Below are positions 9,401-49,943 of a stretch of 64,000 bases of DNA, piece by piece. Under the pieces are notes generated by a model, which saw nothing but the letters and a program-made list of their open reading frames with translations, did no database searches and was not told where the DNA came from. Numbering within the stretch: the stretch's first letter is position 1; each line of letters opens with the position of its first letter. The stretch is from assembly GCF_001194135.2 (NCBI RefSeq), contig NC_068998.1, positions 11,815,880 through 11,879,879 on the forward strand, given 5' to 3'. The DNA is from Octopus bimaculoides. Taxonomy: Eukaryota. A program made the position numbers and the translations under genes.

Positions 9401-12400
9401 CTATATTAACAATATAACACTTTCTCCAGTAATTACCAGTTAAAGGAAAAGCAAAACTCACATTGATTAGGTCAAAATTAAGCCCCAACAGGAAGCCTCA
9501 GAATAGTTTAAACTAACATTAGCATATTATTACTGGGACATTTAGCATTGAACCAGCAAGATTTGAAATTGGAACCAAGAGGGACAAATCTAAATACTGC
9601 AATGTAACCTATATTTTCAATTAATCCCACAACTGGATTGGAATTTTCACAACTTATAAATCCCAGCACCTTAATTTTGATAGCATCCTGCATGAGACTC
9701 TGCATTTTATACTATAAGACAGTTCTTTAAGTGTTATACTTCAATTTAAATGTTCAGCTGTAATTCTATGTAAGAATCTTTCCAAACTCTAGCTTAATGA
9801 TGGAAAAGTTAGATTATTAAATCCTTGCAAATTCTTAAAATATCTTCAAAATCAGTTGAAACACATTTTGAATAAATAATAAATTAGGTAACTAAAAGGT
9901 TTAAAGATCTATCTATTCATAAGTGAATCCTTACAGAATATCAAACCAGTTATTCACAGCAATGGATTGTTCTTCATCAGCATGTGAATATTTACATGAA
10001 TAAACTTGAAAAGTTTAAAGAGGGGAAAAGGAAAAAAGAATATTTTTTATTCATTCATCATTTTAACATTCACTTTTTTTTCTTCTATACTTGCATGGGT
10101 CCAAAGGTTATTATTGAAGCAGATTTTCTACTGTCAGATCCACTTCTTGTCATCAACATTCACCTGCTTCCAAGCAAGGTAATAATATTTCTCTGTGACC
10201 AGACATATTCACATTTACAAAGAGACGGACATTTAAAAGAACAAACCAAGTTTATACATTTGTTTCATTTGTTAAAACAAGAATTTCTTTTTGAAGCTGG
10301 ATGTTTTTCAGAGACCAAACTGCTTTTTTGCCATTATATCTTTGAGACATTTCAGGAATGAGGGGACCTGCAACCTTCTAGAAGTCCACTAGGACCACTT
10401 TTACATAACACTAGGAGAGATTTGACTATTTTGGGCAAACAATTACATATCAATTACATCATTGAGTTCTTTTTGCATTTTATGACAACCACCACCAAAT
10501 GTCTCCTTCAGTTTGGACATAAATCGCTATTTCTTCCAGGTATGCTTTCACTTTGCAGCAAAACTAATATTTCAATTTTTGCAATTCCTTTCATTAAATT
10601 AACAATAAATTCATTAACATCATCATCATCATCATTTAATGTCCGTTTCCATGCTGGCATGGCTTTTCTATTATACAATTGAAACATTATTATAAATTAT
10701 TTGATAACTATATGTGAATTTTTAACAAGAGATAATTACAAACTGATCTGAACAATTTTTCCATGGCAGCATGGGTTGGACAGTCAGACAAGAACGACAA
10801 GCCAGATGGCTGTGCTGAAATCCAGCTGGTTGCCTTTCCTAATGCCAAACACTTTACAGAGGTGTACTGGGTGCATTTTTTCCATATATGCATGTGTGTG
10901 TGTTTTTTTTTTCATAAAATATAATCAGCAGGAAGATACAGAAGTATCACAAAGGCCAAGAGTTTTGTGCATGGCAAGTGATAAATGCCACATACAAATA
11001 CACACACACACACATGTATGTTTGTAAACAAAAGAAATGAGCACTCAGTAAATTTGTGTATGGCACAGATTTGAAAGACATGAAGAAAAAAAAAAGTTAT
11101 GATAAATAAGCAACGTACACGTCAGGATTTTCCGGAAACAACTTGTTTCTGAAAATATATAAAAATATATTTAGAATAAATTAAACAACAGAAATTAAAC
11201 ACAATTTCTTACTTCTTTTAGATAAATTATATATGATACATTTACATAACGTTACTCAATTTTTGTATTTAGAATCTTAAGGTTATGACAAAGGAAGTAA
11301 AAGAAACTGTTCCGTATTGGGAAATAAGTAGCAATCAATTTGTTTGGAAGACACATATCAAGCCATTCAAAAACACACAAAAATTGTTAACTTCGTTTAA
11401 ACATCATCATCATCGTTTAACGTCTGCCTTCCATGCTAGCATGGGTTGGATGATTTGACTGAGGACTGGTGAACCAGATGGCTACACCAGGCTCCAATCT
11501 GATTTGGCAAACATTTAATATTTGGAATCAAAATTTTCACAGGACCAATTGTGATCTGGTCATTGACATAGTTCCACCGCAACTGGTTTGAGATGAGGTT
11601 GTTGGTCAGAGTATGTAGGCTCCAGAATTATAAATGTAGTGTTTCCAGTCATGTAGGTCAGTCGTTCTGATTTGTCAATGCCCGGTGCTTATAGTTTATC
11701 AGTTAATTCGATACTCGGTTGTACTCCACACATCCTCTCTTCCCTCTTTCTTTCAGTGGGGTCTCCTTTCACATTGTGAATTACAACCAAATACTAAGTT
11801 AACTGACCAACTATAAAATTTATAATCCTAAAACTTAGATATATATATATATATATGCTGACCAACAACCTTGCCTCAAACCAGTTGCAGTGGAACAGTG
11901 TCAGTGACCAGGTTGCAGTTGGACAAAACTTTTGACATGTTTATAATAAATGCCTAAGTTAACAACGGATTCAAGCACACTGGGCAAAATGCCAAAATGC
12001 TTAGCAGCATGTCATCCGTCTTTATGTTCTGAGTTCAAATTCAACCAGGGTTGACTTTGTCTTTCATCCTTTCAGGGTCAATAAAAATAAGTGCCAGTTG
12101 AGCACTGGGGGTCGATGTAATAGACTTACCCGTCCCCTGAAATTGCTGGCCTTGTGCCAAAATTTGTAAGCCTGTAATTGTTTTAGTTTCAAGTCACAGT
12201 CCTAAATCAAATCGCTTGCCTAGCAAATACATCTTTGAAATTATTAATAAGCTATCTTGAACTTACCTAGCTCGTTTTGAAGGGGGTGCATTTGAGTTCC
12301 CAGGTGAGCTATTTTTTTCCAATGTAATGCTATCACTTTTTGAAGCTTCTGTGTCGGACTGCATTTTGTCAGATTTTTCAACTTTAATCGTTGGCCCCTC

Positions 12401-15002
12401 TGAGGACTGATTACCAGATGATGCTAGAGAAAAAAAGTTGTGGGGAAAGACAGACCATAATTAAAAAATTAAAATAATGTTAAATGATTAAAACACTTGT
12501 TTAAAAAAAGAAACAAAGTACAGAATTCATCATCAGCATCATCATTTAATGCTAGCATGGACTGTATGGTTTGATAGGATCCCTTGGGCCCAAGAACTGC
12601 AATGTGTTCCAGTGTGCTTTGGAACGGTGTCTAAAGCTGGATGCCCTTCCTTAAGCCAACAGCTTTACATCATGTACCAGGTGCTTTTTTCTGTGCCACC
12701 AGCACAAGTAAGGTCAGCATGCAGCTCACAAAAAACCTGAGGGGAAGTGGGTAAGGTACAAGAGCAGGTTCTTGTAGAGGAGTTACATGGCAAGTGAGAA
12801 TGTTCAGTTGGAGCTTTGGAGCTGCAAAGACATAAATATAAATAGTGGTGATGAGGAGTTCAGGTGGCTCCTCAAGGTACGAGGTGAGCAGAAGTGAATG
12901 GGAACAGAAAAACTAGGAGTGTGGGTGAGTAGGGGTTTGCAAAGAGTGAACAGAGAAGCAAGAGATGGGAAGTAGACAACGTCTGTAAAGATAGAGTAGA
13001 TGTAAGAATTGCCGTTGTCGTCATTATTATTATTTAATGTGTTTTCCATGATGGCATGGGTTGGAGGGTTTGACAGGGGCTGGCAAGGCTGGGAGGCAAA
13101 CCAAGCTCCAATTATTGTTTTGGCATGGTTTTTACAGCCAGATGCCCTTTCTAATGCCAACCATTTTACAGAGTATACTGGGTGCTTTTTATGTAGCACC
13201 AGCAATATTAGTGCATATTGCTTTTTACGAGGTACCAGCATTGGTGCTTTTTACATAGCATAATTACTGACAGGGTCACTAAGTACCTTGCAAGAAAGAA
13301 GAAAGGCAAAAGGCAAATATAACTATAAGTTGAAACTAAGAAAACAATGAAAGAAATTGACAATACAAACCATCAAATGGTTTCTGATCTGGGACAGCTG
13401 ATAAACCACCTTGTCCTCTACCCTCTAGCGAAGAATGACTTCCCTGAAATAAAATAGAAAATACATGAATCTTTGTGTATTTGTACAAATGCATCTACAC
13501 AGAGGAAGAGGGGGAAATTATCAAATAAATTCCATTTAGATAATTAATTAGGTCTAGGGACTGAAACACTTTCTTACAATTAACTTGATTTTGTTACTAA
13601 TGACACAAATATTTGAAATTTTCCTTTGTTTTATTTATACATTACGTAACGGTAGTTCATTAGTTGTAGCAGTGTATCAGTATTATGGGATAGATAGAGA
13701 GAGAGAGGGATATATATATATATATATATATATATGTATAGGACCACTGTTGGTAATATAAGACTGTCTTGTATTAGGAGATGTAGCTATTTCAGAAAAT
13801 GACAGAAGCCAACGTACTGGGCTAAAGGATAACAATATAGAGAGATATTATTTGCTTTGAAGGCAACAAACTTGTTATGATAATACTCAGACAATTCCTA
13901 ACAAGATAAAAAAATTTTTGTCTTGAGGTTTTGCTTCATAACAAGCACCCAATGACATTAAATTTGAGAACCAATAGAAACTGCTAAACAGGATATAATG
14001 TGCTTCGATGGTCACACTGCTCAGTACAATATCCACTGATAGTTACATTACACCCCAAGTCTTAGGCATTCATTTAAGCTACCATTTCAACAAAATCTTT
14101 TATCATTTGAGCCAAAGTCATGTTAAACCTTTTAGCTTTTAGATGACCCTACCAAGTGTAAAGCTTATTTATTCACATTGTTTTGAATCAATTCTGTGTT
14201 ATAGCTTTAAAATTTCAATGATGTGACTGTTTATGTTTAGAATGACATTGACATTGTAGGGCAAGTGTGAGAGAACATAGCTGGTCAGTGTGAACATAAA
14301 ACAGGGTGAACACTAGAGCCACATATCACCAATTTAAATGTTAAAGAGTCACTAGGTGTCAACAATGCAAAGAATTTAGAAAGAGTTGGATGAATCTAAT
14401 GGTGATTATAAAGGTATGGTAGCTCATAAAATTCACTCTGATTTTTCTGAGAAGAAAAAACTCCTGTATTTGACCATGATTGACAATGATCCCTTCGAAG
14501 AACAAAATTTTGAAACAATATGTTACAAATAAAGCTATGAGCTCAACCACTGTAACTCAATAAGAGACAGCAAATATAGTGAAGGAAAAACAATACAGAT
14601 CGAAGGCTAAAAAAAGTCAACGGTCTAATAAATACATATAACACATTTCAGAAATACAGACATGTATGTGAAGAGGCTTTGTTTTCAATAAGTCAATCTT
14701 TTAGAACTCAAACTGGCCACATCCAGCCCAAATATTCTACCTGTTTTATGTTTAAACAGTCTCTCACACCCTAAAATGTTGTCCTAAAATTAAACAATCA
14801 AATCACCAAAATTTGAAAGCTACAAGAAAATGCATGATTAATTCAAAACAAAGTGAATAAATAAACATAGTTGATAGAATAATCTGAATGCTAAAGGGTT
14901 AAGACACTTTAAGTGCATATCCCATTCAACATCTTTGAGATTACCATCACAACTGTTAACATCATCAACAGACAACAGAGGGATGCTGTAGACTAAGAAA
15001 GC

Positions 15003-15044: not shown

Positions 15045-17600
15045 GTGGGGAGTACTTAGCAATCACCTAACATTCACCTTCTGCTAAATGGTCATGAATA
15101 AAAGAAGGAAAAATATCACCAGCTTGAAATGAGTTTGCAATACTCACTTCCATGTTTGACAACCAAATATGTTAAACATGTAAACACTAAACATCATGTT
15201 TGGTGCTTTTTTAAAAAAATTTCTGCTCTGTGCAAACACCCACCTAACTTTATTTGTCTATTTTTTCAGTGCATTAAACATATATATCATTCTTCTGCAC
15301 TTAAAAGTTGCACTGTCTTTACAGCATTGAGTTTCTGTCTTTGTTTACTATAAACAGACAGAAATTTAATATTCTGTATGAGAATCAGACACATGCTTTA
15401 CGAGAATGAAAATGCAACGGGCTACAGCCCAGAGCCTTGGCGAGCACCTAACCCAATGTAAAGTTACATAAATGAGAAAAATTAGCAAACACACACACAT
15501 GTAAGTGCATGTACAGACACATACAAGCGTGCACACAGATACATACATGAATACATGCACACACACATACATTCACGCACACAATTTTACTTAATGGAAA
15601 GAACAAACCACTCAATGTCAGAAACATCAAAAAGATTGAATAACACTTCACATTGAAAATTCAAGATTCTTCTGACTAAAATAAGCATCTGGTAATCATT
15701 TAACACTATATAGAGCTTGAGGCCATGTGGTCAACATAGCATTAAGCATCATACACACATTTTTTATAGCTTTCATCCAACTTACTCGAGCACTGACATT
15801 TTCCTGTTTGTTATGCCTAGCTGGCTCACTGTTCCCATTGGTGAACTGTATTTATTTTCCTAACTGTGCCAGTTACAAAATAAACATCATAGTGGCAAGT
15901 TCTAACATTCACAAACTAGCTTGGTAAAAGAGCATAGAAACCATCTGTGAGAACTTGGTAAGTATTAATAAAAGCCATATGTAAAAAGTAAAGAGGAGGG
16001 TATAAGTTTTAACTGCTTTTAACGGGAAAAAAAAAATGTAACTGATATAAAGACAGGAAATTATGAATCTGGCCAGAAATTTTAGGCTTATTACTTTTAA
16101 TGAATCTATTGTTGTAAAGTTTTGTAATTAATACATTTATAACCGTAAAGAGATAGGATTCATGATATATATTTATATCCAAATTTACAATGGTCATTAA
16201 TAAATGTTTAAACCCTCGTCCCAGCAATGTTCTCCCTCATATTCAAACAAATTAATAAAATAAATATTAAATAATAATAATATTAATAATGCAAACATTG
16301 GGTAATAAACAGCAAAGTCAACATTTTTTGCTAAATATTATTATAAAAGATGAAAAGCAAACTATATCTCACCATATGGGAATCCATGTGTGCAGCAGCT
16401 GCCACAGCCATTGAGAGGCTTTGGTAAGAAGGTATATTGGCATTTGGCCCACCTGGTATTCCAGCTGATGTCCCATTGGAATGTGGCGGTGGTTGCATTA
16501 TGCTGCTTGGACCTCCTGTCAAACCTGGAATCATACCGGGAGCTGGTTGACCTTCGGCATGGTTGCGTAGAACCAATATGGCATCATCTAAACGTTCTTC
16601 CATCCTACTTTGCTGTTTGGAGAAAAAGAAAATTACATCATTAATTAATTGAGAATTTACCCTTTTAATGATTTCTTCCAAGTAGGCATGAAGAACACTT
16701 CTGGAGAGTAACATGTATAGTCAATAAAACCAACTGTATTCATTTGCAATTAAATATCCAGAAACAGAAATCAGAAGTTGACCTCTGAAATTTGAACACA
16801 AAGAGACCAGACTCAATTGCTGTAAGGTATAAAATACAATCTAATGTGCTACTGTTATCAGCAGTTATACACAATGTGATGAAGTAATAATTATTGTTTG
16901 CTATTTGTCTGGGTCAAGCTACTTAACAGCATAGCATAGCTGTATGGTTAGGAAGTTTGCTTTGTGACAACATGGTTCTGGGTTCACGATCACTGCAGAG
17001 CACCTTGGGTAAATGTCTTCAACCACAGCCCTGAGTTGACCAATGTTTCCCCGAGTAAAATTTGGTCAACAGAGACTGTGCTAGAGTATTTTCACTGCTC
17101 TAAATAGGGATTTAATTTCTGAAATTCAAGCAGGTCTTGCAGAAGATTTTGAAGACACAAAAGGTGTAAAAGATTTATTGAAATTTTCTTTGAATTTCTA
17201 TCTTTCTGGTTTCTCTGTCAGCTTTACCAATTTGGATATAATTGGTATATATTCCTTAAGATTCTCTTTCTGCCCTCCCTTGATGACAACACCATATATC
17301 CTATTTTAAATGTGAGACTGTAAGAAATACAAATTTTCTATGCAAAGAGAAATATGTATTTCTGAGTGTGCCTTCTCGCCTTAGCCAGCTCTATATATAT
17401 GGATATTATATGCACACCATTCTTTTAGTGTTCACTTTTCCATGCTCTCATGGGTTCAATAGAGTTTATTGAGACAACCTTTCTGCAGCCAGGTGTCCTT
17501 CCTTCCACCAATCCCCCACCTGTTTTAGCAGAATATTGGAAATGAATGACACTGCTTCTATGTCAGTGACATAATTTACATTTATCACAAGATATCAAGA

Positions 17601-23600: not shown

Positions 23601-26600
23601 ATAAAAAACAAAATTTATGTTTATAGCATGCAAACATCTCCACAGTTTTTTAATGATCATGCTGACTTTCTTTGCAAATACAAGGCAATACATTAAGCAC
23701 TGGTGCACCAGATTACCAAATCATTCCTTGATTTAACCATGCAGTATATTACAATTCTATCATCTGTAACTCTTTTTTTTTCAGAGAAACGATTGACCAA
23801 TCAAATCATGCAGTCTATCTTCTGCTACCATGCTACTGCTTAACCCAGTGTTGCTGTAGAAGCAAGGCAACTACAGTTGGAGATGTTTTCAACACACATT
23901 CACAGCAAAATTTAACACGGAATAACATAATAGAAGCCTACCTTCTGAATGTTCTTGTTTTCTCCCCTGCTATAGCGTAGCTTTAATGAAAGATAAAAAC
24001 AACAGTTTACCACAGTATTGAACCAAGTTTAATTTTAAAATGAGCAAAACAACCATAAAAATGCATCGCAGTCTTTATATTGTTTTTTTTTTATCCTTCA
24101 GAATTGTGGAAGAACCTACAGCAAAAGTATATTAGTATATCTTAAGCGTTTAACATGCTTCATTCCCCATGAAGCATATATACCTCATATTCATTCCCCA
24201 TGAAGTATGTATACCTCATATACTGACCCACACAACTACAATTATTGGTGTATATAAGTCTGTGAGGATGTATGAGTGATTATGAGTGTATGTGTGGTGG
24301 CATGCTGCATGAGATGAACCGATGTACAAAATTAAACACTTGCATATGTCCCTACTCCGCACACTGAATAAGTATTTTTACAAGTTGATGTCTGCCTTAA
24401 AATCCATAGCTTCAGCTAAATAGACTTGAGTAAATGTAAAGTGGACTGCCCGAGAATCTACAACCCAATGCCAATCACAGAGTTTGAAGCAATCATTTGT
24501 AGGAACTAACCACCATATTGACATCTAATAGTGATAAAACTGAGAGTTAGAAATTGATTTCACCACTGGAACGAAAGCAATCTGATAACACATTCATAAC
24601 AAATTGGATTAGCTGAAGTGTTTGGAAGATTTCAATAGAACATTTGAAGAAAATGATGCAAACACTTACTAATGAATGAAGATGGTTGTCAAAATGTGGC
24701 GAGGTAGTGCTGCTCTGAGTGCTTGGTCGCTGCCAGTGACTAGTTGGGCCTGAAATAGTAACAAAATAATTCAATAACAAGCTTTATTAAACAATTTCAT
24801 ACACAAATGAACAAATAAAATCAGTATGCTTTTGTATCAAACAATGTTTCCCACTTTTCCATAATAGTCAATAAAGCTGATATTTTGGCATTCAACACTC
24901 TAGATATAAGCACTGTTAAATTTCAAGACTGCTAATATTCTTTGAATTTCGCTCTTTTGTTTAAAGCTGTCACACCAGTATCTAACAAAGCCTTCTTCAT
25001 TCAGCTACCTTTCTTGAAAATAAAAATCCTTAAATAGGTTTTATTTTATAATATGATGTTGATACCATATTCCACTCACTTTGCAAAAGAAATTGTCTAT
25101 ATGGCTGACATTTCAGCATAAAATTGTGAGGTTAAAAGACATCATATTTTTGATGATGTCTTTGAATTCACTCTGTTATTGAAAGTTTCTGCATTACCAC
25201 TGAAATCCACATCCAAAAGTCTGGGTGTTGAACAATGATAGTATTAACCCCATTATGTGCATCCTCATTTTCATTGGTCCCATTTTGGTTAAACGATGTG
25301 TGTTATTAAAATACTTGAAGCATCTCCTACAAGTACTATAGAAATTACTTCTGCTAGTCAACATCAAAACAGTTGGAAGGTGATTTTGATATAATTTTCT
25401 CTCTCCACCGGAGAAAGTAATCTCGTGATACCAAAACACTTTAAAGGCAAACCTGTTAGGGATTTCGTCCTTACAAAAGTTTGCCAGATGATGATGAAAA
25501 CAAGATGGTGACAACCTTCAATGATGGAGTGAAGTGCAAAGAACATTTGAAGACCTGTCGATTCAAAATGCTTTATCTAGTAGAGTATTTTAAACTGGAC
25601 TGTATAGGTGCAGGCATGGATGTATGGTCAAGAAGCTTGCTTTCCACCATGCGGTGTCAGGTTCTGTCCCACAGCTCAGTACCTTGAGCAGTTGGCTTCT
25701 ACTATAGCCCCAGCCTGACCAAAGCCATTTGAGAGGATTTGATAGATGGAAAATAAAAAAAGAAGCTCATCATGTGTATACCCTTGTCTTGACAACAGTT
25801 GAGGGTTGGCAACAGCAAGGGCATCTGGCTTTGGATAATCTACTTCACTGAATTCCATCTAACTCATGCAAACATGGAAATATAGATACTAAAAGGTGAC
25901 GATAATATATAACTGCATTAATTCATTTTTATAGGATAAACAATACTTCCAGTTTCATCTATGTTGGATGAAAGAATATTCATAAGGCAAGTTTTAAAAA
26001 GAATCTTTGCTTAATTATTCTTTCCCATTACATATAACTTTATATAAGTCATTAACAAATGATATAATAATTATTAATACACTTATTCAATTAATATATA
26101 TAAGTGTACACTACATATTAATGTCCTAAAAATGGTGAACACACACATACACACATATATATATACCATTTATAGGACATATATATATATTATAGAACCT
26201 TTAGTTCTAATATATTTTATAGAACCTTTAGATCTAATGTACTCAATATTTCCCATAATTGCTTTCTCCTGATGATTTGAATTTTTACCTGACATAGGAG
26301 GAGGTGATGATACTGGAGTGGAAGGGTTCGAGCCATAACTGCTGTTAGTATGTTCTGTGGAGTAGATCTAGAAAACAGAAAAGCAAATCATAATAATAAA
26401 TAACGATAATGATGATGAACAATGAAAATGATGATGATGACAATGATGATGATATAGGCATAAGACCACAAAAATGGGGGGACGGAGGGAATGGTTGATT
26501 AAATCAGCATTGGTTCACGACTAGTACATGTTTGCATGATGCCAAAAGGATGAAAAGCCAAAGACACTCCCAGATTGATTTGAACTCAAAATGCAAAGGG

Positions 26601-29600: not shown

Positions 29601-31375
29601 CTGAGGCTTAAAGATTGTAAGTCAGATGCTCTAAGTTTTGATAGCATTGAGACAACGAAAATATATATATAAAAATAAACTAAGTCATTTAAAACAACTG
29701 AAATAACATGAATAATCCCATTACATAGAGTCTTATATTCTAGCTTACACTTTAGAATACTAATTGTTAGGCTTATTAGATAATGAGTTGAAACACTGTG
29801 CAAATGCTTTTGGGTAAAGGAACATATTTCGCTGGCACCAATAAACGAACAAAAAAAAAATTGATCCATCTCATTCTATAGCAGAACATCTAAACAAAAG
29901 TCATTTAAACTATTTTTGAAAATATTGTAAAATTGCAAATCTGATCAACCAATGCCAATAAAATATTCCACTGGGTCTAAATATAGCAGTTTATTTTATT
30001 AATTTATAAAATTTATTACAGCAATTTGAAAAATATTTGGAACCAACAGTGGCACAAATTTTTGTAATGGCAAAGATATTTCAGATCAGGATGTTTACTT
30101 GTTACATGTAAATCACTGTATAATTTGTAAATAAATATTCCAAATACACTTTACATTAAAGAGCAGAACAGCCAATTTAATTAACTTTATGGTTTCAAGT
30201 ATCACTACCTTACAATGTACATGATGTGAATCATGTAATTTAATGAAAGAATAACTTTAATAGAACTTAGGGAATTAACCTCATCTACAGCTTCCCATAA
30301 GCACTTTTATTGTTCTTAGTAGATCTAAGTTAATTAGTTTATTTTGGAGTTAATTATACAAATGACTTGGCTTAATGAAGGAACACTTACAGAGGCTAAT
30401 GCTTTTCCTAATGTGTCTCCTGTTTGTGTAGTTCCTTGATTACGAGAGGCCTGCATAATATCAGAGCCATTCACTGTAGGTGAAGTGTTGGAAAATGTGG
30501 ATGATGACACAGGAGGCACAGTAGGTAGCGTGTTGCTACTACTGCGAAATGTTGACATAGGAGGAAGACCTGATGATAGCATAGCTTCATGATTTGGGGA
30601 AACAGTATGGTAACCCTAAAAAATAAACAAATTTTACTTTATTGAAGATGGCACTAAAATTATTTTTTGGTTAAAATGCAATTAAAAAAAAAACAAAGCA
30701 AGAAATAAACAATAAATAAAAATGAAAATGTTTAAAAGTGGACAAGTCATCTGTTTTCTGCTGGCAAAACTGGTTTTTCTTTTTAAGTCCATTCTGGTGT
30801 AAATGGGGAAATTGTTGTCAGAGTAAATGTTCAGAGAGGAAAATATTCAGGATAAATTCTGCTTTATTAAAACTTTTACTGGAGATTCTAAACAATTATT
30901 ATTAGTTGCTAATTAAGACAAATCTACATAATCACATTAGGGAACATGTTATCAGATCTAATATAAATTTAGAAAACAAAGAAGTCAGAGGCATTTAAAA
31001 TAAATTTTAGACATAAATGAATATACTACAGTTGTGGGGAGTATAGGAAGCAGAGTCCCAAGTTTGCTGGGGTCATGAAAATCAAATAAATTTCAGAAGA
31101 AACTGGCGAACCAACAGGAAATAAAATGATCATAAAATAAAAAAAAAATAAAAAAAAAAAAAAANNNNNNNNNNNNNNNNNNNNNNNNNNNNNNNNNNNN
31201 NNNNNNNNNNNNNNNNNNNNNNNNNNNNNNNNNNNNNNNNNNNNNNNNNNNNNNNNNNNNNNNNNNNNNNNNNNNNNNNNNNNNNNNNNNNNNNNNNNNN
31301 NNNNNNNNNNNNNNNNNNNNNNNNNNNNNNNNNNNNNNNNNNNNNNNNNNNNNNNNNNNNNNNNNNNNNNNNNNN

Positions 31376-38000: not shown

Positions 38001-40634
38001 ATCAGTCAATAAAGTTAAGGATTAGAAGAACAATATATGGCTGATTTTGTTAAGCGATGAAATAATTTGCCCAACAAACCAGCCTGATATTTTATATGCA
38101 GAAAGATAGCAACATTTAATTTTTGTGCCAGGAGCCTCACAATAGTTTCCTAATATTAACTATCATAACAAGCAGTCAAGCAGATAATAAATGAAAATAA
38201 TATTCCTCTGAGATTTCTTACTCAGCCTTATTTTCCTCCATGCCACCCATCTGCTCCAATTAAAATTTATTTAATGCTGTAGGCGGGTATAATGAATACA
38301 GCAAAAAAATAAGAAAACAAGAGAAAACAAAAAAAAAAACACACACACTAAGAAACCCAGGTATAAAGTAACAGGATTTTAATTTGCTGGGGCAACTGGA
38401 GATAGAGGAAGAAAGATTAAATAGTGTTAAGATATAAGTTATCTTAATAACATGGATGAAGAAGGGAAGGTGATGATCACGTGGCGTCCTGAAAGCAACA
38501 GTAGCAGAACAGTAATTCAGAACAATGATGATGAATATTACAGACCTTCTGGTAGAAAGTATGTTCAGGATGAGAGACTACAGTTAATGCAATGATGGAA
38601 AATAAGGCACATTCTTGTATGTACATACAAGAATATACACAGTAACAAGTTTCTCGTATTAGTAAGTTCATCTCAACTATGTTCTAAGAAACAATTGAAT
38701 TATTTCAATGAATTTGAAAACCTAATGAAATTTCTGGTGTCAATTGTTCAGTAGAATATATGACCATCTCTACTGGTCTTAACCATTAATCTAGAATTAA
38801 TCATGCTGGAATTTGATTTAATATCACACATCAAAGAACTATTGTAGTCTGGATATATGTCTGATGAAGGTTTCTAATTGAAGGTTTGCTTACTTTTAAA
38901 CTACACAATACCACAAACCCTTATACATATATCTGGGCTATGTTTGATGTTTAGAGAGAAATGAACCAAATCAAGAGACAACAAAAATAATTTACTTACC
39001 ATGTCATGGGTATGATGCATGCCACTGTAAGTTGATGGCTGACTATAATGATGGGAGCTACTATTGTGTAGAACTGATGAAGTGTATGAGGATGTAGGAA
39101 GGCCATTATTTTGAGACCATGGGTCGCTAGAACTATGTGGATTATCTGTCAAGAGAAAGAAACATTAAACAGTTTAAATTTAATTATGAAGCATTAAATA
39201 TTGTCCAAGCTGGTATATAAGATGCATTTTTTTTTTTATTCTTAAATATAACAAAAGGTTGCCAAGAATCTAATTTGACTGCATTGCGGATAGGATACAA
39301 AGGGAATGATGAAACGTTAAATTTTTTTTCTTTAAAAACATAAAAAAAGGAAGGGTTTATTTTATGCAAGAGTAAGTCTTACAGACTGGCAAATACAGTG
39401 CTTTAAATTCAATCAACAGTACTAATTACAAAGTTTAACTCGAAAATGGGTAATTGCTGGAATTTAGTCTAAGCTGAAATTAAAAAATGAGTTAAAGACC
39501 AGCTAACTTAATACCAATTAGGGGCAATATTTTCCTAATTTTGTTGATACAAAAGAGTACAAAAATACTGAATATTTGGACCAAAAGCTTAAAATTTATG
39601 CTGTAAAAGTAAAACCATATCGAATAGGAAATCTCTTTAATGTTGTACACATGTATGTATGTTTATATAAACACACACTTATTATCTTTTTTTTATTCCA
39701 GTGTAGGAGCCTGTACTTGGTTGTTCAACTGCTGATGTGTTTTTCAAGCTTCTTACTGCCTTGAAAATGGAAACCATATTTTATGACAACATTAAAAAAA
39801 AAAAGATGGCCATGGAACACCAATTAAATTATGAACTTTAACTGAGCTAACACACCAGATAGACAAGATAGAGTTTACGATGGTTTTAATGTAAAGGGCC
39901 AGTGGATTACTCTTAAGCATACCTACAAACCCAGTACATTAATGTTAAATGTAATGAACCAGAGAATCTACTGCTATACTGTCAAGTATGCAAATATTTT
40001 ATGTTGTTAAATATATGCCCTAACATATATGATTAAGTACACACACACACACACACACACACACCAAGCATTACTTAGTTAAATATACTGGTTTATTTGC
40101 TTTGAAATAAATAAATAAAACTAGTGAGAATTTACATTTCATTTAATTCTACTGGTAAAAAATTCAACTTCACTAGACTTGATGTGGCTCCGTTGTTAAG
40201 TAGCAAATTATATACTAACAGGATCAACAATATTACTGAAACTATCAGAAGTTATATAATTAAATCTAATTAAACATTAACAAATGGTACATATATATTA
40301 TTTTGCAATGGGTAGTCATTTCTAATCTCAAGAAACTTTATTTAAATGAAGATCAAAGTTAAACAAAACAATAGATTGGTTTAATAATATATCATATTTT
40401 TATGTTGTATATTTAATACTTTAGCATCTCAGTCAGAGCAGAATTTACACCTAGAACAGATAAATATCACAGCTACCACAACAACTACTGTTGGCAGAAA
40501 TGAAAGGGTCAAGAATGAAAATATTTATAACAGATAGAAAAAATATGCAGCAGTCAACAACATGAAAACCAAGAATGTTATGTATATCTTTCAGTATATG
40601 TATTGCACACATGCTTATATGAGTTTTGGGTTTA

Positions 40635-40675: not shown

Positions 40676-43600
40676 TGTTGAAACACAGAGAGTCTTAATC
40701 TTTTACTGGCTTATAACCTGCCAGCTGAAATCAACATAGGATTATACAGAAAATAAAATGTATCCATGGTCGAAACATATCTAAGTTTATATATATATAT
40801 TGAATTTTATTCCAATATAATTGTATTGTATGCATTCTTATTTATGTCTTTCAAACACGGTGCATGTGTGTGTATGTGTGTACTGAAGGCTAGATTCAAC
40901 AAACAGTAATGGGATTAGGTGCTTGTAGCTATAAAAAAATTAAAAAATTTAAAAAAAAGTTTTCTAAACCTAACTTTAGATCAGTAAGTATTCCATGTGT
41001 TTGTGTTACACTAAGAAAATGAAACAATGAGAATGGAAGTAGAATCAAATTGATTGATATATCGATTATCAGAACAAAAATATTTTACAAAGCAGTCAAA
41101 TTTTAAGATATGTATGAGAATTAAAAATACCTGAGTTTATACACCAAGAAAACAGCTCCTAAATTTCACATGGATCAATTTAGCTGTACCATTCATGACG
41201 GAAATTTTAACTTGCTTTTTGCTTTTAACTCTTTAGCATTCAGATTTTTCTATCAAATGTAAAGCTTATTTATTCACATTATTTTGAATTAATTATGCAT
41301 TATCTCGTAGCTTTGAGAGTTCAATAATATGATCGTTGCATTTTTAGAATAACATTGTAGGAAAGGCATGAGAGATCAGATCTGGCTGGTTTGGACATAA
41401 AAGATAAAATATTTGGGCCAGATATGTCTGGTTGAAACACTAAAGGGTTAAAGCTATGTAAATACAAATTTCATACTGGCTGGTACCTATCAGAGCAATA
41501 CCTGTCATGTTTCAATTAGTGCAACTTATGCACAAATAAATATAGTAATTTCAGAGTAATTTGCTAATTAGAAACTAAGTAAATCATCCTGAAAAAGAAT
41601 CTTTCCTTAAAACAAAAATGACAGTCTAGTTTTAAACATTTCATGGAATTTCAACTATTATATACATATATATATTTACATGCACACACACACAGACACA
41701 CAGAAAACCAGCATGAAGAACTATTTACAATGATTAACATTTTATACTGTTAAATATTCACACCAGCTAATGTGTTTAAATATATGCACCAAACTTTATA
41801 TTGCTAAATACAACTGTTCCTTTACTTCTGATCTTTGAGAAAATTAACAGGACAAAATAATGTGGATCTATTGTGAAGTAGCAAATTATAAACTGATAAG
41901 ATTAAGAACTTCACTGAAACTATCTGAAGCTCTATTACATTCTAATTGAACTTCAGTGAACACTATTATAATAGTTAACCATTTCTAATCTTAAGCAACT
42001 GTATTCCAATTTAGACTTGTGCAAAAAAAATATTTAAAAAAACTCAACTAAATGCCCCAGTAAAATACTGAATTTGAAGCAAAACACATGTGCACACTTG
42101 ATGGGATATCTAGCATGTTTATTTTTTTTTTAAATAAGAGAGACAAACTTTCTGTAAATGATAATGTATAAAATATTGTTTTAATAAGCATCACTCACTG
42201 ATATTTTATGCTGTAAAAACAGCAATATAATAATGAAAAAAATATAGATTTTATCTTTTTGCTACTCTATTTCAATATATTTTAAAAATAAACAAGCATT
42301 AAGTAAAACTATTTTGTCATTATTAAACTGCTGTTTAGAATATAAATCAGCATGGAATTCTGATAAAAGGTTTTTAATTTAGGTTACTCTAAAACTGGAA
42401 GCTTGTACTGTAGGAACAAGGGTCGTCTCAGGCAGGTTTGGTATCAAAAGGATGAACTCTTTCGGAGTTTATGAAGAAGAAGTAAAAATAATCCCTTTTG
42501 TAAACACATTTCAAATAGCATTAAAGTAGATTAGCTCTTCCTGATATGAGTTATTCTGATAGACTTCAAAGAAGAACAAAATGAGTCTTAGACCAAATGG
42601 GAGGTAGGAAAGGAAACAAACTATTAACCACAAAATTTTGATTTGTAAAATAATGGAGAAAGAAATATCAGGTACTCACCGTACATATAGGACTCATAGA
42701 TACTTGGTTTTGGAGACGGATACTGCGGTGAATCTTGACGGTACTCATCTGGGCTAGGTGAGTAAACCTTCAAAAGAAAAAGAAATTTTTTTTTTTGAGT
42801 ATTGTAATTTAATGATTACCAGTAGTGTCTGTGGAAATTTCATGTAATATTGAAAACTAAAACAATGTCAACAATTTATAGAGATCCACAAAATACATTA
42901 TTTTCTTTTTTGTTTTTTTTTTTAAATGCATTTGTGTTTGGCTCTTGAAATGGTGTAAAATCCCGCATGGGTAGTACTTAAGAGAGAACATCTTTGGAAA
43001 CTATATTCTTTGTTATACACTTATTGTTTTTTTCTACCTTGTTACTAATTATTTTTATGTTTATGTCAAAAAGGAAAAAAATCTTAACTATGGAATGAAA
43101 CCGAAGCTGCTTTGCTACAGTATGACTATGTTAGTAAATCTTTAACCTGCACGATTTACTACATCATTTAGTTTCACATCAGATGAAAGTTCAAACATTT
43201 GGGTTTGAAGCCACAGTCCCAGTTTACAAAGTGCAGTAGTGCTTCACTGAACTATAGATTCTAGATAGAAAAACAAAAAAGTAATACACACATAATCACA
43301 TTCACATACATTGATAGAAATATACAGATCTGGAGAAAGACTGTAAACACATTATAAACACAAACATACACACACACATTTGTGCAATTGATGTAAATAT
43401 AGCCTTGCAAGTATATTTCTACTAGTTATACATGAAATCTGGAGAGAACATCCTTTCTGAGAATGCTTGCATATAACCAACCATGTGGTGTATGTATACA
43501 GACTCAACAGTAATTAGAGTATGAGAATGGATACTTTTTTTTAGATGTTTATAAACTGTTGGGTCTCTATACATATACAACATCCTGAGTAACACACACA

Positions 43601-45867: not shown

Positions 45868-47634
45868 CCTTTCTACTATAGGCATAAGGCCTGAAATTTG
45901 GTGGGAGGGAATTAGTACTTATTTCACTGATCCCGAAAGGATGAAAAGCAAGGTTGACCCCCAGCGGAATTTGAACTCAGAACATAAAGATGGATGAAAT
46001 ATCGCTAAGCATTTCGCCCGACACGCTAACAATTCTGCCAGCTTGTTGCCTTAATAATAATAATAATGATGGTTTCAAATTTTGGCACAAAGCCAGTATT
46101 TTCATGGGAGGTACATCGATCCCATTACTCAACTGATACTTCTTTTATTGAGCTCAAGAGGATGAAAGGCAAATTCAACCTCAGCAAAATTTTTACTCAA
46201 GACTCAAAGACGGACAAATTACCGCTAAGCATTTTGCCCAGCATGCTAATGGTTCTGCTAGCTTGCCGCCTTATTATAATAACAATCCTTTCTACTATAG
46301 GCACAAAGCCTGCAATTTTGGGGGAGAGGACTAGTTGATTACATCGCCCCTAGTGTTTCCCTAGTACTTAATTTATTGACTCCAAAAGGATGAAAGGCAA
46401 AGTCGACCTTGGCAGAATTTGAACTCAAAACATAGTGACAGGTGAAATACCGATAAGCATTTTGTCCAGCATGCTAATGATTCTGGCAGCTCGCCACCTT
46501 CAATAATAATAATAATAATAATAACAGCAGCAATATCTAACTTTTATCATAACAACAATTTCTAACCAAGGCACAAGTGTATTTTTCATGAAGAGTATAA
46601 TCGATTAAGATCAACTGGTGCTTATTTCATCAGACACAGAAAGATCAGAGGCAAAGTCAATTCAGACTGAATTTGAACTCAGACTATTAAAAAAAATTAA
46701 AATAAAATAAAAGAAACTGAAAATACGAATAAAATTCTGGTTTATAAAATTAACTGAGCTCCATGTGTAATGCCGAAGGCCAATGCAAAAATATGAGTAG
46801 ATGAAAATAATCCTATGTGGTAAAAATATTCACTTGCGAGTTGTTTAATATAAAAAGCAAGAAATTAGTGTCAATAACTCCGAGTAAAATCCAATGTAGA
46901 TATCCAATATGTAAACTTAAGAGTAGGTCCAATGTGGAAATATTGAAGGTAAATTATACATCAAATCAAACTGGACATTAAAGCAGTTCACTAAAGTTCC
47001 ATGATGATGTAAATGAATATCCAATATAAGAGATAGTTAAAGAAAAAAACAGTCAGTCCTTTGGTGCTTAACTCCAAATAAATCCATGTAGCATCCAATG
47101 GAGATGGCCACAAGTAGAGAGGTCCAAGTCAGGTTCAATGAAGACAGAAGAAAGAAATTTGCAAAACCACATATATACACACTAAAGAAGGGTAAGCATT
47201 ATTAAATTGGTTTGTCTGAGTCTGTGTGTGTGTGTAAACATACAGAGAAAGAGAGAAAGAGAGATATTTAGTTATGAAGTAGATGAAAGTAGTCAATTAT
47301 ATTTACCAAATAAACAGCGGATATATAAATGACTTACTGTCTCAAGATAACATTGTATAACTTAAATTATATCATGAAACCACTACAATTAACTAACCAT
47401 ACTGCCTCAGAAAATAACATTATATAACTAATTAAATTGTAAACAAGCTAATTCCCAAGTTAGCTCCTGTTCCTTAATTTCATTAAGTTCAAAATAAAAT
47501 ATTATATAAGTGAAAACTAAATAAATCTAAACAGAAAATTTTTCAGTTAAAAAAAAAAAAGGTACTATACTTACATTTCCTTTGGGAGGGAGATACATAA
47601 GGGTTCTATAGAATGGATATGTTGTACAATACAT
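114..47634 (-). CDS. TCF12: E-protein (class I bHLH, daughterless/TCF3/TCF4/TCF12 co-ortholog). Span of predicted Alt-A isoform: 13 exons, 1788 nt, 595 aa. Canonical 5' exons lie outside the window.
   Basis: Hand-assembled join (minus): 47634-47575, 42767-42680, 39145-39000, 30615-30391, 26367-26289, 24749-24670, 16612-16373, 13443-13371, 12423-12267, 9027-8944, 7095-6950, 2973-2857, 406-114. All introns GT-AG, phases consistent, no internal stop. Symbol is nominal: invertebrates usually have one E-protein. Confidence 0.95.
536..900 (-). mobile_element. tRNA-derived SINE (tRNA-Arg-like head; octopus OR-type)
   Basis: Minus-strand head GGCGCAATGGCCCAGTGGTTAGGGCAGTGGACTCGCGG...GGTTTCGATTCC with A and B boxes; (CAA)n tail. 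Confidence 0.8.
1131..1345 (+). mobile_element. SINE family B (head GGCGAGCTGGCAGAA; core gagttcaaatt..gactttgcctttcatcctttcggggtcgataaa)
   Basis: More than 15 diverged copies recognisable in the window. Confidence 0.8.
2857..2973 (-). CDS. TCF12: E-protein C-domain exon (E|[39 protein letters not shown])
   Basis: Invariant E-protein motif [17 protein letters not shown]; acceptor tgtgtttag|AA; donor G|gtaagg; 117 nt, phase 1-1. Confidence 0.97.
4930..6070 (+). mobile_element. Decayed hAT-superfamily transposase (ZMYM1-like type), frameshifted
   Basis: Fragments [13 protein letters not shown] (RW motif), [26 protein letters not shown] (C-terminal dimerisation domain) and [17 protein letters not shown]; multiple stops. 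Confidence 0.75.
6950..7095 (-). CDS. TCF12: HLH exon (R|[48 protein letters not shown])
   Basis: Class I HLH sequence; acceptor ttttgttatacag|G; donor G|gtaggg; phase 2-1. Confidence 0.98.
8603..8712. repeat. Three-copy 33-36 bp tandem repeat with 8 E-boxes
   Basis: Unit aaaCAGCTGtctgcaagaaCAGTTGggcaagtt. CAGCTG at 8606, 8639, 8675; CAGTTG at 8622, 8658, 8691; CATGTG 8699; CAGATG 8707. Confidence 0.9.
8944..9027 (-). CDS. TCF12: Basic-region exon (S|[28 protein letters not shown])
   Basis: E-protein basic region (R..ANNARER); tandem acceptor ttttcaaTAG CAG (starts 9027 or 9024); donor AG|gtattg; 84 nt, phase 2-2. Confidence 0.96.
11543..11924. mobile_element. Degenerate foldback/MITE-like element with 67-bp inverted arms
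   Basis: Arms 11543-11609 and 11858-11924 align ungapped with 12 mismatches out of 67. Confidence 0.75.
11955..12170 (+). mobile_element. SINE family B copy
   Basis: Shares the core and tail with 1131-1345. Confidence 0.75.
12267..12423 (-). CDS. TCF12: E-protein exon (A|[19 protein letters not shown]...PPSKRA)
   Basis: Acceptor ttttttttctctag; donor AG|gtaagt; 157 nt open, phase 1-2; IKVE and PSKRA motifs like the pre-bHLH region of E-proteins. Confidence 0.9.
13371..13443 (-). CDS. TCF12: E-protein exon ([24 protein letters not shown]|A)
   Basis: Acceptor tttctattttatttcag; donor G|gtttgt; 73 nt, phase 0-1, exactly bridges the exons at 16373 and 12423. Confidence 0.85.
14123..14902. mobile_element. 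Two TTAA-MITE copies in inverted orientation
   Basis: 14123-14350 (+) and 14701-14902 (-) share tttatttattcac.ttgttttgaat.aat and aacataaaacagg segments. Confidence 0.7.
16373..16612 (-). CDS. TCF12: AD2-region exon ([21 protein letters not shown]...AHMDSHM)
   Basis: Conserved ERLDDAI.VLRNHA motif; acceptor ttttctccaaacag; donor ATG|gtgaga; 240 nt, phase 0-0. Confidence 0.96.
18116..18344 (+). mobile_element. Second TTAA-flanked MITE family
   Basis: TTAAcccctt ... aaatggTTAA, 229 bp; partial related sequence near 9770-9830. Confidence 0.55.
19010..19260 (+). mobile_element. SINE with tRNA head and CORE-like segment
   Basis: ggctatgtgataagaagtttgcttcccaaccacatggttccagg...gtgtcttctactacag; related copies at about 16930, 25610, 32865, 36260 (+) and 4330 (-). 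Confidence 0.7.
19720..20010 (+). mobile_element. RTE-clade LINE 3' fragment, decayed
   Basis: Degenerate W.G.V.R...RG.P.K.W pattern ending in the gcatggaaaa tail shared with SINE family C. Confidence 0.5.
20854..21146. other. Assembly gap; other gaps at 497-506, 31165-31375, 45392-45595 and 54685-54694
   Basis: Runs of N. Confidence 1.
21815..22000 (-). mobile_element. SINE family C 3' part, young copy
   Basis: catcatcatcgtttaacgtccgctttccatgctagcatgggttggacgatttgac... shared with other copies. Confidence 0.8.
24159..24220. repeat. 31-bp tandem duplication
   Basis: ttcattccccatgaagcatatatacctcata twice, 2 mismatches. Confidence 0.85.
24670..24749 (-). CDS. TCF12: E-protein exon (G|[26 protein letters not shown])
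   Basis: Resembles the vertebrate W.R...SP.Y...LHSL exon; acceptor ttactatttcag; donor TTA|gtaagt; phase 1-0. Confidence 0.92.
26289..26367 (-). CDS. TCF12: E-protein exon ([26 protein letters not shown]|G)
   Basis: Conserved [16 protein letters not shown]; acceptor ttttctgttttctag; donor G|gtaaaa; phase 0-1. Confidence 0.95.
26500..27650 (-). mobile_element. Cluster of about 5 family B SINE copies separated by (TAA)n/(TGA)n
   Basis: Repeated ggatgaaaggcaaagt.gacc..g.ggaatttgaactcag motif at about 26545, 26770, 27125, 27340 and 27540. Confidence 0.8.
26922..27099. mobile_element. hAT/Charlie-type MITE inserted within the SINE cluster
   Basis: TIRs cagtggtactcaacct / aggttgggaaccactg; 8-bp target-site duplication gacttgta / gactagta. 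Confidence 0.85.
28720..29110 (-). mobile_element. RTE-clade LINE 3' fragment, decayed
   Basis: Minus strand reads [15 protein letters not shown] and ends in the family C tail. Confidence 0.55.
30391..30615 (-). CDS. TCF12: E-protein exon ([24 protein letters not shown]...[12 protein letters not shown])
   Basis: LPPMSTF and QTGD.LGKALAS motifs; acceptor tttattttttag; donor TCT|gtaagt; 225 nt, phase 0-0. Confidence 0.96.
31931..31995. repeat. Perfect 30-bp inverted repeat with 5-nt loop
   Basis: aattaaaaatttcttgtgattttgttgatt-gcttt-aatcaacaaaatcacaagaaatttttaatt, checked base by base. Confidence 0.97.
33440..33820 (-). mobile_element. SINE family C 3' part (ggaagggcatccagctgtagaa core, RTE-like tail, (GAT)n)
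   Basis: Near-identical to 21815-22000 and 11400-11517; further copies at about 10615, 12530, 13020, 17440, 17640, 21250 and 62150. Confidence 0.8.
34330..35590 (+). repeat. Cluster of a ~150-bp interspersed repeat (family D) within an old tandem duplication
   Basis: Recurrent gtttag.cccagg, ggcattccagc..tgacca and gctgctatttctagca; other copies near 44640 (-), 49490 (-) and 61880 (+). Confidence 0.65.
39000..39145 (-). CDS. TCF12: E-protein exon (D|[16 protein letters not shown]...HHTHDM)
   Basis: SSDPW motif; acceptor tttctttctcttgacag; donor ATG|gtaagt; phase 1-0. Confidence 0.93.
41225..41451 (+). mobile_element. TTAA-flanked piggyBac-like MITE (full length, 227 bp)
   Basis: TTAActctttagcatt ... 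cactaaagggTTAA; related copies at 14123-14350, 14701-14902 (inverted), 43605-43692 and 58940-59122. Confidence 0.75.
42680..42767 (-). CDS. TCF12: First shared exon ([29 protein letters not shown]|D)
   Basis: Homologous to the vertebrate VYAPS..D..R.SP.YPS.KP exon; acceptor ttttcttttgaag; donor G|gtgagt; phase 0-1. Confidence 0.95.
45660..46690 (-). mobile_element. Head-to-tail array of 5 family B SINEs linked by (TAA)n
   Basis: Copies at about 45660-45815, 45868-46051, 46069-46272, 46285-46500 and 46560-46690. Confidence 0.85.
45816..45867. repeat. (TAA)n microsatellite; many other (TA)n, (CA)n, (GA)n and (CAT)n tracts in the window
   Basis: Read directly; other examples at 15006-15040, 18035-18065, 31376-31424, 34965-35017 and 63270-63343. 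Confidence 0.95.
47575..47634 (-). CDS. TCF12: Alternative first coding exon Alt-A ([20 protein letters not shown])
   Basis: acaATG start with an in-frame TGA upstream; 20 codons; donor AAT|gtaagt, phase 0; MYC..YP...LMY pattern resembles HEBAlt/TCF4-A. Confidence 0.85.
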
Positions 47635-49718
47635 TGTAACTAGTTTCAAAAAATGAGAGAAAGTGAATGAACCAAAAACTCTTCAGCTGGTCATTAGATC
47701 CAAAGTGAACGAATTAGACCAATATATATTCAGAGACATTGAGAACCTAGCTACAAGTGACCACTCACAGCTATAATCCATTAGTTAGGAGAGAAAGAAC
47801 TTTTCCAATTAATTCACATTATTATGAAGTAACTTTCAGAAACTAATCATTGCTGTTGTTGTTGATGATAATGATGGGAGATGAGAGACGATAATGAGTG
47901 TAGTAAACCTTGGTATCAATTATCTGCTTAGCTGTTTGAAAGAATAGTAAAAAGCCTTCATGAATGGACAGGTATTCCTTTTAGTATGAGACGCCAAGAT
48001 TATTAGGCCAATGTGGGAAACAAGCTAAACTAAGAGTAGAGGTTCAGGCAGCATAAGCTGAAATAACATCTTTGTCTGGTAGTAGAAGTTGGTTTCTTAA
48101 AATTCAGCAGCAGCAGCACACATGGTATCACCAGCACAAGCCAGTCTATTCACAGACTTGCAGTAGTAGGATTTAAACTAGGTTAAGAATGTGATTTGTG
48201 TCAACTTACAAACTAGATTATTGCATACTGTGTTGATTCTAGAGAGAAGGGATAATTTGACAAAAAAGAAAAAAATAATAATCTACATCAGTAATAAGTT
48301 AGGGTACATCTCTCTTTTTCTCTCTCTCTATTTCAAGAACAGTTATTAATAGTTTAAAAACATTAAGTTTTGCAATGGGTTTATTATATTTGTAGTTCAA
48401 CCCAAGTGTGTGTGTGTATATGTGTTCACACATGCTCACACAAACACAACATAAATAGTGTTAAGGGGGGAAAAAAAGGATAAAAAACAAGACAAATCTA
48501 ACACTTGCTAAATGAAAGATTTTAAATAAGGATTTTTAAATAAAAATAATAATAATAATAATAGTAACTTGATAGAAGAAATTGTTTTTTTTCCCTCCCT
48601 TTGAATTAGAACTAAATTAATTAGACTTGAGCAAAAGACATTTAAAAATACAAGAAAAAAAGCTAGAATTATGACAAATCCTTACTTTTATATAAAAATT
48701 TTTTTTTAAATGGAAGGAAAAGTCATTTTATGAAATATTAATAAAGTGTTGTGGGTATGAAGTGGGGGTGGGACAGGATTAAAGCCTAAAGCATACAGAA
48801 ACTTTATTTTTAATGTCAGTAAAACCTGGCATTTAAGTATAAAATTATTTTAACTCTATATTTTCAAATATGAATGCATAGAGGAACAATTTAGGAAAAG
48901 TTATTAATTCTTTTTTTGACAGACAAAACAACTACGTTTTTATTTTATATACAGAAGGAGAGGGTGTGGCCATCAATACTCTACCAATATTAAATTATAA
49001 TAGGTGAATTGTGTGTTAAGGAGAGAGAGAGAGACAAGAGATGGAGCTTGGGGTGTATAGGACTTGGTCAAAGCAAAAAAGAAAGGAAAAGGAAAAATTG
49101 GGTCAAAAGTATTTTTACGGAAAAGTAGCAGCATTTCCCTCAATGGTTTAGAATCATGAACTAAATTTCATCAAGAATCAACAGCAAAATTGGGGGAAAA
49201 AAATATACATATTGCTTTTTTTTTATATATATATTTCCACACAATAAAATAGTTATTCATTAATAATAGCAAACAGCTAATGCTGTCAGAATTAATTAAA
49301 TAAAAAGAATTATCCAAAAATATAAAACTGTTTATTTCATTGTGTGTGTGCGTGTGTCAGTTATTTAGGTGGCTTTGAAGAATATGCTGTCACATAATGA
49401 ATATATAAAAAACAAAAAAGGCAAATGTTTTTTGTTGTTTAATAGTAAAGATGGCAACACTTTTTCCAAACAGAACAAAGGAATCTCTGAGATTACACAG
49501 TCTGCTAGAAATAGCCACCAAATCTCCCTCAAATCACATACAACTGGTGGGGTACACGTATTCTCAAAAAGAAATGACAGGATGAGCCTGGCTTGAATAT
49601 CTTTGATCACTGGTTTACTCTTTGAGATCCAACTAAGAACTAAACAACAACATATATGGAAGGTAGAAAAAGGGATTATTAATTATGAATGATACACACA
49701 CACACACACAAACACACA

Positions 49719-49943
49719 TGGTTGGCCAAAAGTCACCTGATGGTAAATCAAAACCATTTAATTCCAAGATTTATTTATTTATGTTTAACAACTGAATGAA
49801 TTTAATAAAACATCTAAATATGAAACATCATAAAAATTGTTCAAACTAAAGTCCTTCTTGAGCGACACATTTCCCCATTCGGGTCAATACAGAATTACAG
49901 AGTATTTATGTAACTTTGATTTACTATGTGGTGACTTTTGGCC

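Follow-up and report, generated by a model that had tools for sequence, protein, structure and literature searches.

A probable Alt-type start exon in the E-protein gene of an octopod-like cephalopod

We analysed a 64,000-nt stretch of the Octopus bimaculoides genome (NCBI RefSeq assembly GCF_001194135.2, contig NC_068998.1, positions 11,815,880 to 11,879,879; the whole stretch is called the window below), in which a 20-codon exon on the minus strand is probably the coding part of an alternative 5' "Alt" exon of the cephalopod E-protein gene, the counterpart of the exon that opens HEBAlt and TCF4-A in vertebrates. The host is an octopod-like cephalopod's only E-protein gene, a class I gene of the basic helix-loop-helix (bHLH) type from the TCF4/TCF12/TCF3/daughterless family. 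E-proteins are obligate partners of tissue-specific bHLH factors, and the short Alt isoforms of vertebrates (HEBAlt, TCF4-A) have roles of their own in the development of lymphocytes and of the nervous system. Alt isoforms are already known from vertebrates and sea urchin, and public gene models of annelids, bivalves and corals already contain Alt-type leaders that have drawn no comment; a literature search for lophotrochozoan Alt forms found nothing relevant. In what follows a slash within a sequence marks a splice junction.

Results

Read on the minus strand from 47634 to 47575, the exon is ATGTATTGTACAACATATCCATTCTATAGAACCCTTATGTATCTCCCTCCCAAAGGAAAT (codons ATG TAT TGT ACA ACA TAT CCA TTC TAT AGA ACC CTT ATG TAT CTC CCT CCC AAA GGA AAT), and a consensus gtaagt donor follows. 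The start codon occupies 47634-47632 and the last codon, AAT, 47577-47575. The next exon of the model, exon B, begins at 42767 after ttttgaag and has its own gtgagt donor at 42679; joining the Alt donor to the exon B acceptor gives a phase 0 junction at which the reading frame stays open. The 20-codon minus-strand exon, its gtaagt and the in-frame join to the exon at 42767-42680 can thus be read off the window exactly as a preliminary description of this DNA had claimed. There is no in-frame ATG between an upstream in-frame TGA and 47634, so that 47634 is the first usable start in the frame. The Alt region is single-copy within the window by a repeat check, and it lies about 4.8 kb 5' of the VYSPSP exon (exon B), a distance that is approximate because an assembly gap (45392-45595) falls within that intron.

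The evidence that this short frame is maintained by selection comes from a second contig, L001, which is the part of a 182-kb ENA contig around P0003, a prokaryote-style open reading frame (ORF) call covering exon B, taken with 10 kb of flank. Its exon B has a cephalopod-specific segment (…YESYMY) in common with the window, and its distances to the window and to Argonauta are much the same; on this sequence comparison L001 is a second, more distant cephalopod-like species. When the 12 kb around the Alt exon were compared with L001 by blastn, only two blocks were found, in the same order in both: the Alt exon (82 nt, 84% identity) and exon B (107 nt, 78.5%). The preliminary description had proposed to look in relatives for loss of the ATG, the frame or the donor, and none was lost, as L001:3774-3833 encodes a 20-aa leader followed by gtaagt. 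Eight of the 60 nucleotides differ between the two exons, seven of them synonymously at third positions and one non-synonymously (binomial p=0.0026 for at least seven of eight differences at codon position 3). Conservation starts about 10 nt 5' of the ATG, an A stands at -3 in both species, and the 60-nt flanks on both sides of the exon are 35-43% identical, which is background. At the protein level identity to L001 falls from 95% for Alt to 83-86% for exon B, 78% for exon C and 72% for exon D, so that among these N-terminal exons conservation is highest in the Alt leader. Judged from these substitutions, the Alt exon is under purifying selection in exactly the frame set by its ATG.

The same exon occurs in annelids. 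Searching 1.84 billion representatives in full with HMMER, with the N-terminal 173 residues of the Alt isoform as query, gave 61 E-protein hits. The 529-aa protein KAK2186930.1 of the annelid Ridgeia piscesae (P0010) begins MDTLDARKQAMFCTTYPYYRHLVYMPGKLGA/VYSPNPEEF…, and its leader (MFCTTYPYYRHLVYMPGKLGA/VYSPNP) is identical to that of the window at 13 of 20 residues (z=8.9); none of 20,000 composition-preserving shuffles reached the observed score. With such an alignment, the homology of the window and annelid Alt peptides is beyond doubt. Moreover, in a profile search three siboglinid-type contigs (P0069-P0071) yielded genomic ORFs in which this peptide reads on into an intron. In the annelid locus L002, which is of Ridgeia type, the Alt exon (10079-10171) ends …GGAGCC/gtaagt and exon B lies 3.4 kb downstream, followed by C and D; this architecture and its phase match the arrangement of Alt exon and exon B in the window. 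The annelid comparison that had been suggested beforehand thus yielded a clear homologue in the same place and phase. Because the annelid loci L002, L004 and L005 are 95% identical, flanks included, they give no power for a selection test within annelids. The siboglinid Alt ORF (L002:10079-10108; P0010, P0069-P0071) carries ten extra 5' codons, MDTLD[A/T]RKQA, before MFCTTYP. Translation there could start at the first or the second Met; the cephalopods have an in-frame stop at the corresponding place.

The gene model built from the Alt ATG comprises 13-14 exons, every border being GT-AG, in one open frame that ends at TAG 116-114, and it predicts a protein of 595 aa, or 608 aa when a 39-nt optional exon is included. 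Pfam HLH (PF00010) is found at residues 402-455 of this modelled isoform (E=1.9e-10). A tblastn search with a human HEB sequence matched seven exons on the minus strand, bHLH included, and the best named relative is the Argonauta hians "transcription factor 4-like isoform X2" (GAB1605694.1; 93% identity over the query). Residues 197-795 of the Argonauta TCF4-like protein are all present in the window, in order. Residues 1-196 are missing from it, and neither activation domain 1 (AD1; motif LSDLLDFSAMF) nor the exon preceding exon B was found in 47635-64000, so the canonical 5' exons should lie beyond 64000, more than 16 kb 5' of the Alt exon. The modelled Alt isoform consequently contains no AD1 and keeps a motif like activation domain 2 (AD2) together with the bHLH. 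It also lacks a basic cluster (…SQKRRKSGS) that in the canonical protein of Argonauta stands immediately before exon B; this KRRK cluster is the likely nuclear localization signal (NLS).

The starts of HEBAlt and TCF4-A given in the preliminary description proved essentially right when set beside database proteins P0004, P0045 and P0032. TCF4 of Anolis (P0004, UniRef A0A803SMQ5) begins MYCAYPVPGLGGPSLMYYYNGKT/VYAPS, P0045 is MYCAYPVPGMGANSLMYYYNGKT, and P0032 is MYCAYTIPGMTGSSLMYYYNGKA/VYAPSAST. Compared with the vertebrate type MYCAYPVPGMGSNSLMYYYNGKT, the cephalopod leader has MYC, YP and LMY in common, and the middle third is unrelated. The similarities listed earlier (MYC start, YP, LMY, 20 versus 23 aa, junction onto a VY[SA]PS exon) therefore all hold. 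Of the further claim that intron position and phase are the same, phase 0 stands for the window and the annelid; for the vertebrates what stands is the junction at the protein level only. In both cephalopod and vertebrate Alt, LMY lies at -9 to -7 from the splice junction. An hhalign comparison of the cephalopod and annelid sequences with five vertebrate sequences gave 97% probability, driven by exon B, and the alignment runs without a gap from exon B into the leader, placing the last 11 residues before /VY in the window opposite NSLMYYYNGKT/VY. Furthermore, when candidates were scored by their two ends (first residues plus last nine) against vertebrate Alt, the exon ranked second among 1134 ATG..GT mini-ORFs in the window (z=4.3). 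At the position of the vertebrate YYY the window and L001 read LMYLPP and Ridgeia reads LVYMPG, the first Tyr alone being kept. The absence of the triple-tyrosine motif and its replacement by YLP, already noted from the window, is accordingly seen in both cephalopod sequences.

Other invertebrate proteins also bear short leaders on this junction. Those of mussel, scallop and corals come from gene models; at the DNA level the exon was checked in L002. The mussel Mytilus galloprovincialis (VDH91719.1) has MFYSYPVYPPIGMYLPTKVSG/VYPP (p=0.006 against the window), with YP.Y and MYLP.K in common. Gene models of Sinanodonta woodiana and of Mizuhopecten yessoensis (X2) read MFYLPRPLRPVAQ/VYSP and …DPYYRVYRPYPNMYPPLGLCRPTKV/VYPP, respectively. 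Two corals, Orbicella faveolata (X5, XP_020608522.1, P0125) and Oculina patagonica (X7, XP_078356550.1, P0121), have an identical 20-aa leader, MWRHPYPHQRPLLPYHARGK/VYSP, which aligns with the window ungapped (p=0.002), with agreement at M1, Y6, P7, R10, L12 and G19. The bivalve and coral leaders have no Cys. Identical leaders in two corals hint that an Alt-type exon may exist in cnidarians. In both corals the leader is joined to VYSPGADD, and the remainder of the protein differs slightly between the two genera. In the hemichordate Ptychodera flava (X15/X18; P0110, P0119) one alternative N-terminus, MCKLVHQAAMRSGYPAYYYRG, has both a YP and a run of YYY; this leader (…GYPAYYYRG) is joined to a more 5' exon (/MIEEGRSSW) instead of the VYSP exon. 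It could be an Alt relative that has been displaced, or a Tyr-rich leader of separate origin. No JGI metagenome contig matched a degenerate DNA pattern for M[YF]CTTYP[FY]YR.

Discussion

If the exon is real, its orthology to the vertebrate Alt exon is very probable, and it is the best reading because of the position, the junction register, the end-anchored rank and the chain of intermediates. The preliminary description had already proposed an orthologous Alt exon, and its proposal is supported in this sense, with shuffle p values of 0.024-0.053: the link to vertebrates is carried by position, junction and two short motifs, and the sequence statistics behind it are not strong. Several observations weigh against it. 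In the shuffle tests the Alt peptide of the window reached p=0.024 against HEBAlt and p=0.053 against TCF4-A, and the Ridgeia peptide p=0.16 against vertebrate Alt. A naive semi-global BLOSUM score against vertebrate Alt placed the exon only 3rd to 8th among 1205 mini-ORFs; this score was judged non-discriminating, and the end-anchored score and shuffle tests took its place. The central peptide differs (FYRT versus VPGMGSNS) and YYY is missing, and the mussel, scallop and coral leaders are known from gene models. In addition, leaders unrelated to Alt sit on the exon B junction in Tubulanus polymorphus (X2/X3; P0064, P0022) and in Elysia spp. (P0042, P0058), among them MDYAELKPLQ and MILPW in Tubulanus as well as MISPSPYPPMFQ and MFPPYTLYPGAY…, which means that leaders at this site can turn over. 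From these sequences, alternative first exons seem to have come to lie at this junction repeatedly, their sequence turning over in some lineages. As to the existence of an Alt product, an exact look-up of six modelled Alt-isoform proteins in a collection of 15 billion proteins found no match, the splice variants and the annotation status being uncertain. Word-indexed homologue searches, which led to L001 and L002 but returned almost entirely prokaryote-style ORF calls on eukaryotic contigs and missed the Ridgeia and scallop proteins present in the collection, turned up no cephalopod transcript-derived protein.

A rival reading is that a genuine lophotrochozoan alternative start exon arose, or was remodelled, independently of the vertebrate one. 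Its MYC, YP and LMY would then be convergent or accidental features of a small peptide rich in Tyr. The modest shuffle statistics, the dissimilar centre, the missing YYY and the unrelated leaders of Tubulanus and Elysia would all fit, and the Tyr-rich leader of Ptychodera at another junction shows that leaders of this kind arise at more than one place. We nevertheless regard an independent origin as unlikely, though it deserves more weight than any other competitor. The two exons agree in intron, in junction at the protein level and in length class, a Met-aromatic-Cys stands at the very start and LMY at the identical distance from the junction, and the exon takes second place in the end-anchored ranking; a series of intermediates also runs from cephalopod through annelid and mussel to coral. 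The sea urchin Alt form is, moreover, called "conserved" in the title of Schrankel et al. 2016.

It is considerably less probable that the element is a conserved part of the intron that does not act as a translated start exon, either an internal cassette or "poison" exon of canonical transcripts or a regulatory element that is open by chance. Its appeal lies in a polypyrimidine tract with AG (ttcactttctctcattttttgaaactag/ttaca, 47640-47665 on the minus strand) that ends 5 nt 5' of the Alt ATG. This possible acceptor, ctag/ttaca, also weighs against the Alt exon as a simple first exon, as a non-coding leader exon that we do not see may precede it. No conserved promoter block was found either: when the upstream 1.5 kb of the window were set against those of L001, only low-complexity A/T matches appeared. 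On the other side, splicing from the canonical upstream exon to the AG at -5 would lengthen the transcript by 65 nt and shift the frame, using a frame other than the selected one, and that AG is not kept in L001, where a candidate AG lies instead 29 nt upstream. The ATG, the start context and the donor are all conserved, seven of the eight changes fall at codon position 3 in the frame of that ATG, and the homologous peptides are the N-termini of annelid, mussel and coral gene models. The cassette or poison-exon reading was rejected as unlikely on frame and substitution periodicity. A chance ORF that happens to run into a GT within a long, AT-rich intron is the least credible alternative of all and can practically be set aside. 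More than 1100 ATG..GT mini-ORFs of similar size occur in the window, and the naive alignment score is unexceptional, but only the exon and one other block are conserved with L001 over 12 kb, its changes are almost purely synonymous, and its annelid homologue is unmistakable. We rejected this reading on the L001 conservation, the annelid locus and the shuffle result against Ridgeia.

An Alt exon homologous to that of vertebrates would suggest a mechanism analogous to the one known there. HEBAlt transcription initiates just 5' of the Alt exon (PMC3346973), and the product is missing AD1 and keeps AD2 and the bHLH (PMC9385190, PMC3346973). TCF4-A, without AD1 and NLS, enters the nucleus by piggy-back import on its partners and is a weaker activator (PMC3137626). 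By analogy, transcription in the octopus might start from an internal promoter just 5' of the Alt exon, as for HEBAlt and TCF4-A, and give a product without the canonical N-terminus, that is, without AD1 and the KRRK basic cluster (the likely NLS) and with the AD2-like region and bHLH kept. Such a protein would be a weaker, partner-dependent E-protein, whose access to the nucleus and activity might be set by its dimer partners and by the short Tyr/Pro-rich leader.

The cephalopod exon resembles HEBAlt of TCF12 in being an alternative 5' exon in the intron directly before the VY[AS]PS exon and in a leader that starts MYC.YP and has LMY 7-9 residues before the junction (P0004, P0045, P0028). It differs in the length of the leader (20 aa against 23), in the linker (FYRT against VPGMG(S/A)NS) and in having YLPPKG for YYYNGK, so that the JAK-dependent YYY phospho-switch, which was functionally defined in mouse, is missing. 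The YYY motif has been defined as a JAK-activation feature for vertebrate HEBAlt/E2-2Alt and not necessarily for the whole family. Since there is a single Tyr where vertebrates have YYY, a JAK-responsive switch is probably absent or simpler in the cephalopod. With TCF4-A (E2-2Alt, SEF2-1A, ITF2-A) the exon shares its position and the type of leader (MYCAYTIPGM.G.SLMYYYNGKA, P0032). TCF4-A lacks the bipartite NLS that is encoded just upstream, and the cephalopod Alt form likewise lacks the KRRK cluster, a putative NLS. In contrast to TCF4-A, which belongs to one of three vertebrate paralogues, the cephalopod form comes from one E-protein gene, and its leader differs in the same ways as from HEBAlt. 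In this respect it resembles the sea urchin, an invertebrate for which Schrankel et al. 2016 (Dev Biol 416:149; PubMed 27265865) reportedly describe a single E-protein gene with an Alt form (SpE-Alt) and canonical forms. To the extent of the title of that paper, the sea urchin form places the origin of Alt before the vertebrates. Our hits included no echinoderm Alt sequence.

Our results would extend the two-promoter design of the E-protein family to another major lophotrochozoan lineage, and they correct or extend cephalopod gene annotation. They overturn nothing, since the literature already records a conserved Alt form in an invertebrate. They also point to an invariant core of the leader, which opens with Met-aromatic-Cys..YP and has LMY at a set distance from the junction; the signal-responsive YYY is not part of it. 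It would be tempting to place the origin of the exon before the Bilateria, with a 20-aa leader (Met-aromatic start, YP, a single Tyr or another aromatic residue about seven residues before the junction; compare the coral MWRHPYPHQRPLLPYHARGK) already mounted on the VYSP exon in the cnidarian-bilaterian ancestor. This idea is tentative, and we hold it somewhat less probable than its opposite. Were it true, vertebrates would have built their YYY/JAK switch late, from a single ancestral tyrosine, and the exons of cephalopods and annelids would be natural "YYY-less" forms in which the ancestral function lies exposed. By way of speculation, that function might have been the control of stability or localization through the invariant Met-hydrophobic N-terminus.

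Coordinates and minor observations

Table 1. Features of the E-protein gene in the window, in the order of the gene (positions in the window)
Feature	Position	Strand	Remarks
TA-rich, TATA-like stretch aatatatatt	47721..47730	-	88-97 nt 5' of the ATG; candidate core-promoter element
In-frame TGA stop	47683..47685	-	17 codons 5' of the Alt ATG
Start-codon context gttaca/ATG (slash marks the start), Kozak-like, A at -3	47635..47640	-	gtcacc/ATG in L001 (alignment)
Alt exon, coding part	47575..47634	-	ATG + 19 codons, 20 aa, phase 0 end; homologues in L001 (3774-3833) and annelids
5' splice donor gtaagt of the Alt exon	47569..47574	-	same gtaagt in L001 and annelid L002
Exon B, first shared with the canonical isoform	42680..42767	-	homologue of the vertebrate exon starting VYAPS
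Exon C (...HHTHDM)	39000..39145	-	gene model
Exon D	30391..30615	-	gene model
Exon E	26289..26367	-	gene model
Exon F	24670..24749	-	gene model
Exon F2, optional, 39 nt	23942..23980	-	GT-AG; counterpart in Argonauta isoform X2 (P0005), LRYSRGDKNIQK
Exon G, AD2 / loop-helix-like motif	16373..16612	-	gene model
Exon G2	13371..13443	-	gene model
Exon H (...PPSKRA)	12267..12423	-	gene model
Second small optional exon, (R)NKLFPENPD(V)	11119-11148	-	GT-AG; Argonauta hians X2 counterpart NKLFPEPSE
Exon I, basic region	8944..9027	-	gene model
Exon J, helix-loop-helix (...SLEQQVR)	6950..7095	-	Pfam HLH PF00010
Exon K	2857..2973	-	gene model
Last coding exon, stop TAG (…SYQGSTAP*)	114..406	-	gene model

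The acceptor that follows the second small optional exon is 9027 or 9024. In L001 a long (TA)n microsatellite occupies 3680-3730, 40-110 nt 5' of the Alt ATG, a distance similar to that of the TA-rich stretch in the window. The window contains runs of N (assembly gaps) at 497-506, 20854-21146, 31165-31375, 45392-45595 and 54685-54694, several of which are bordered by (CA)n or (TA)n microsatellites.

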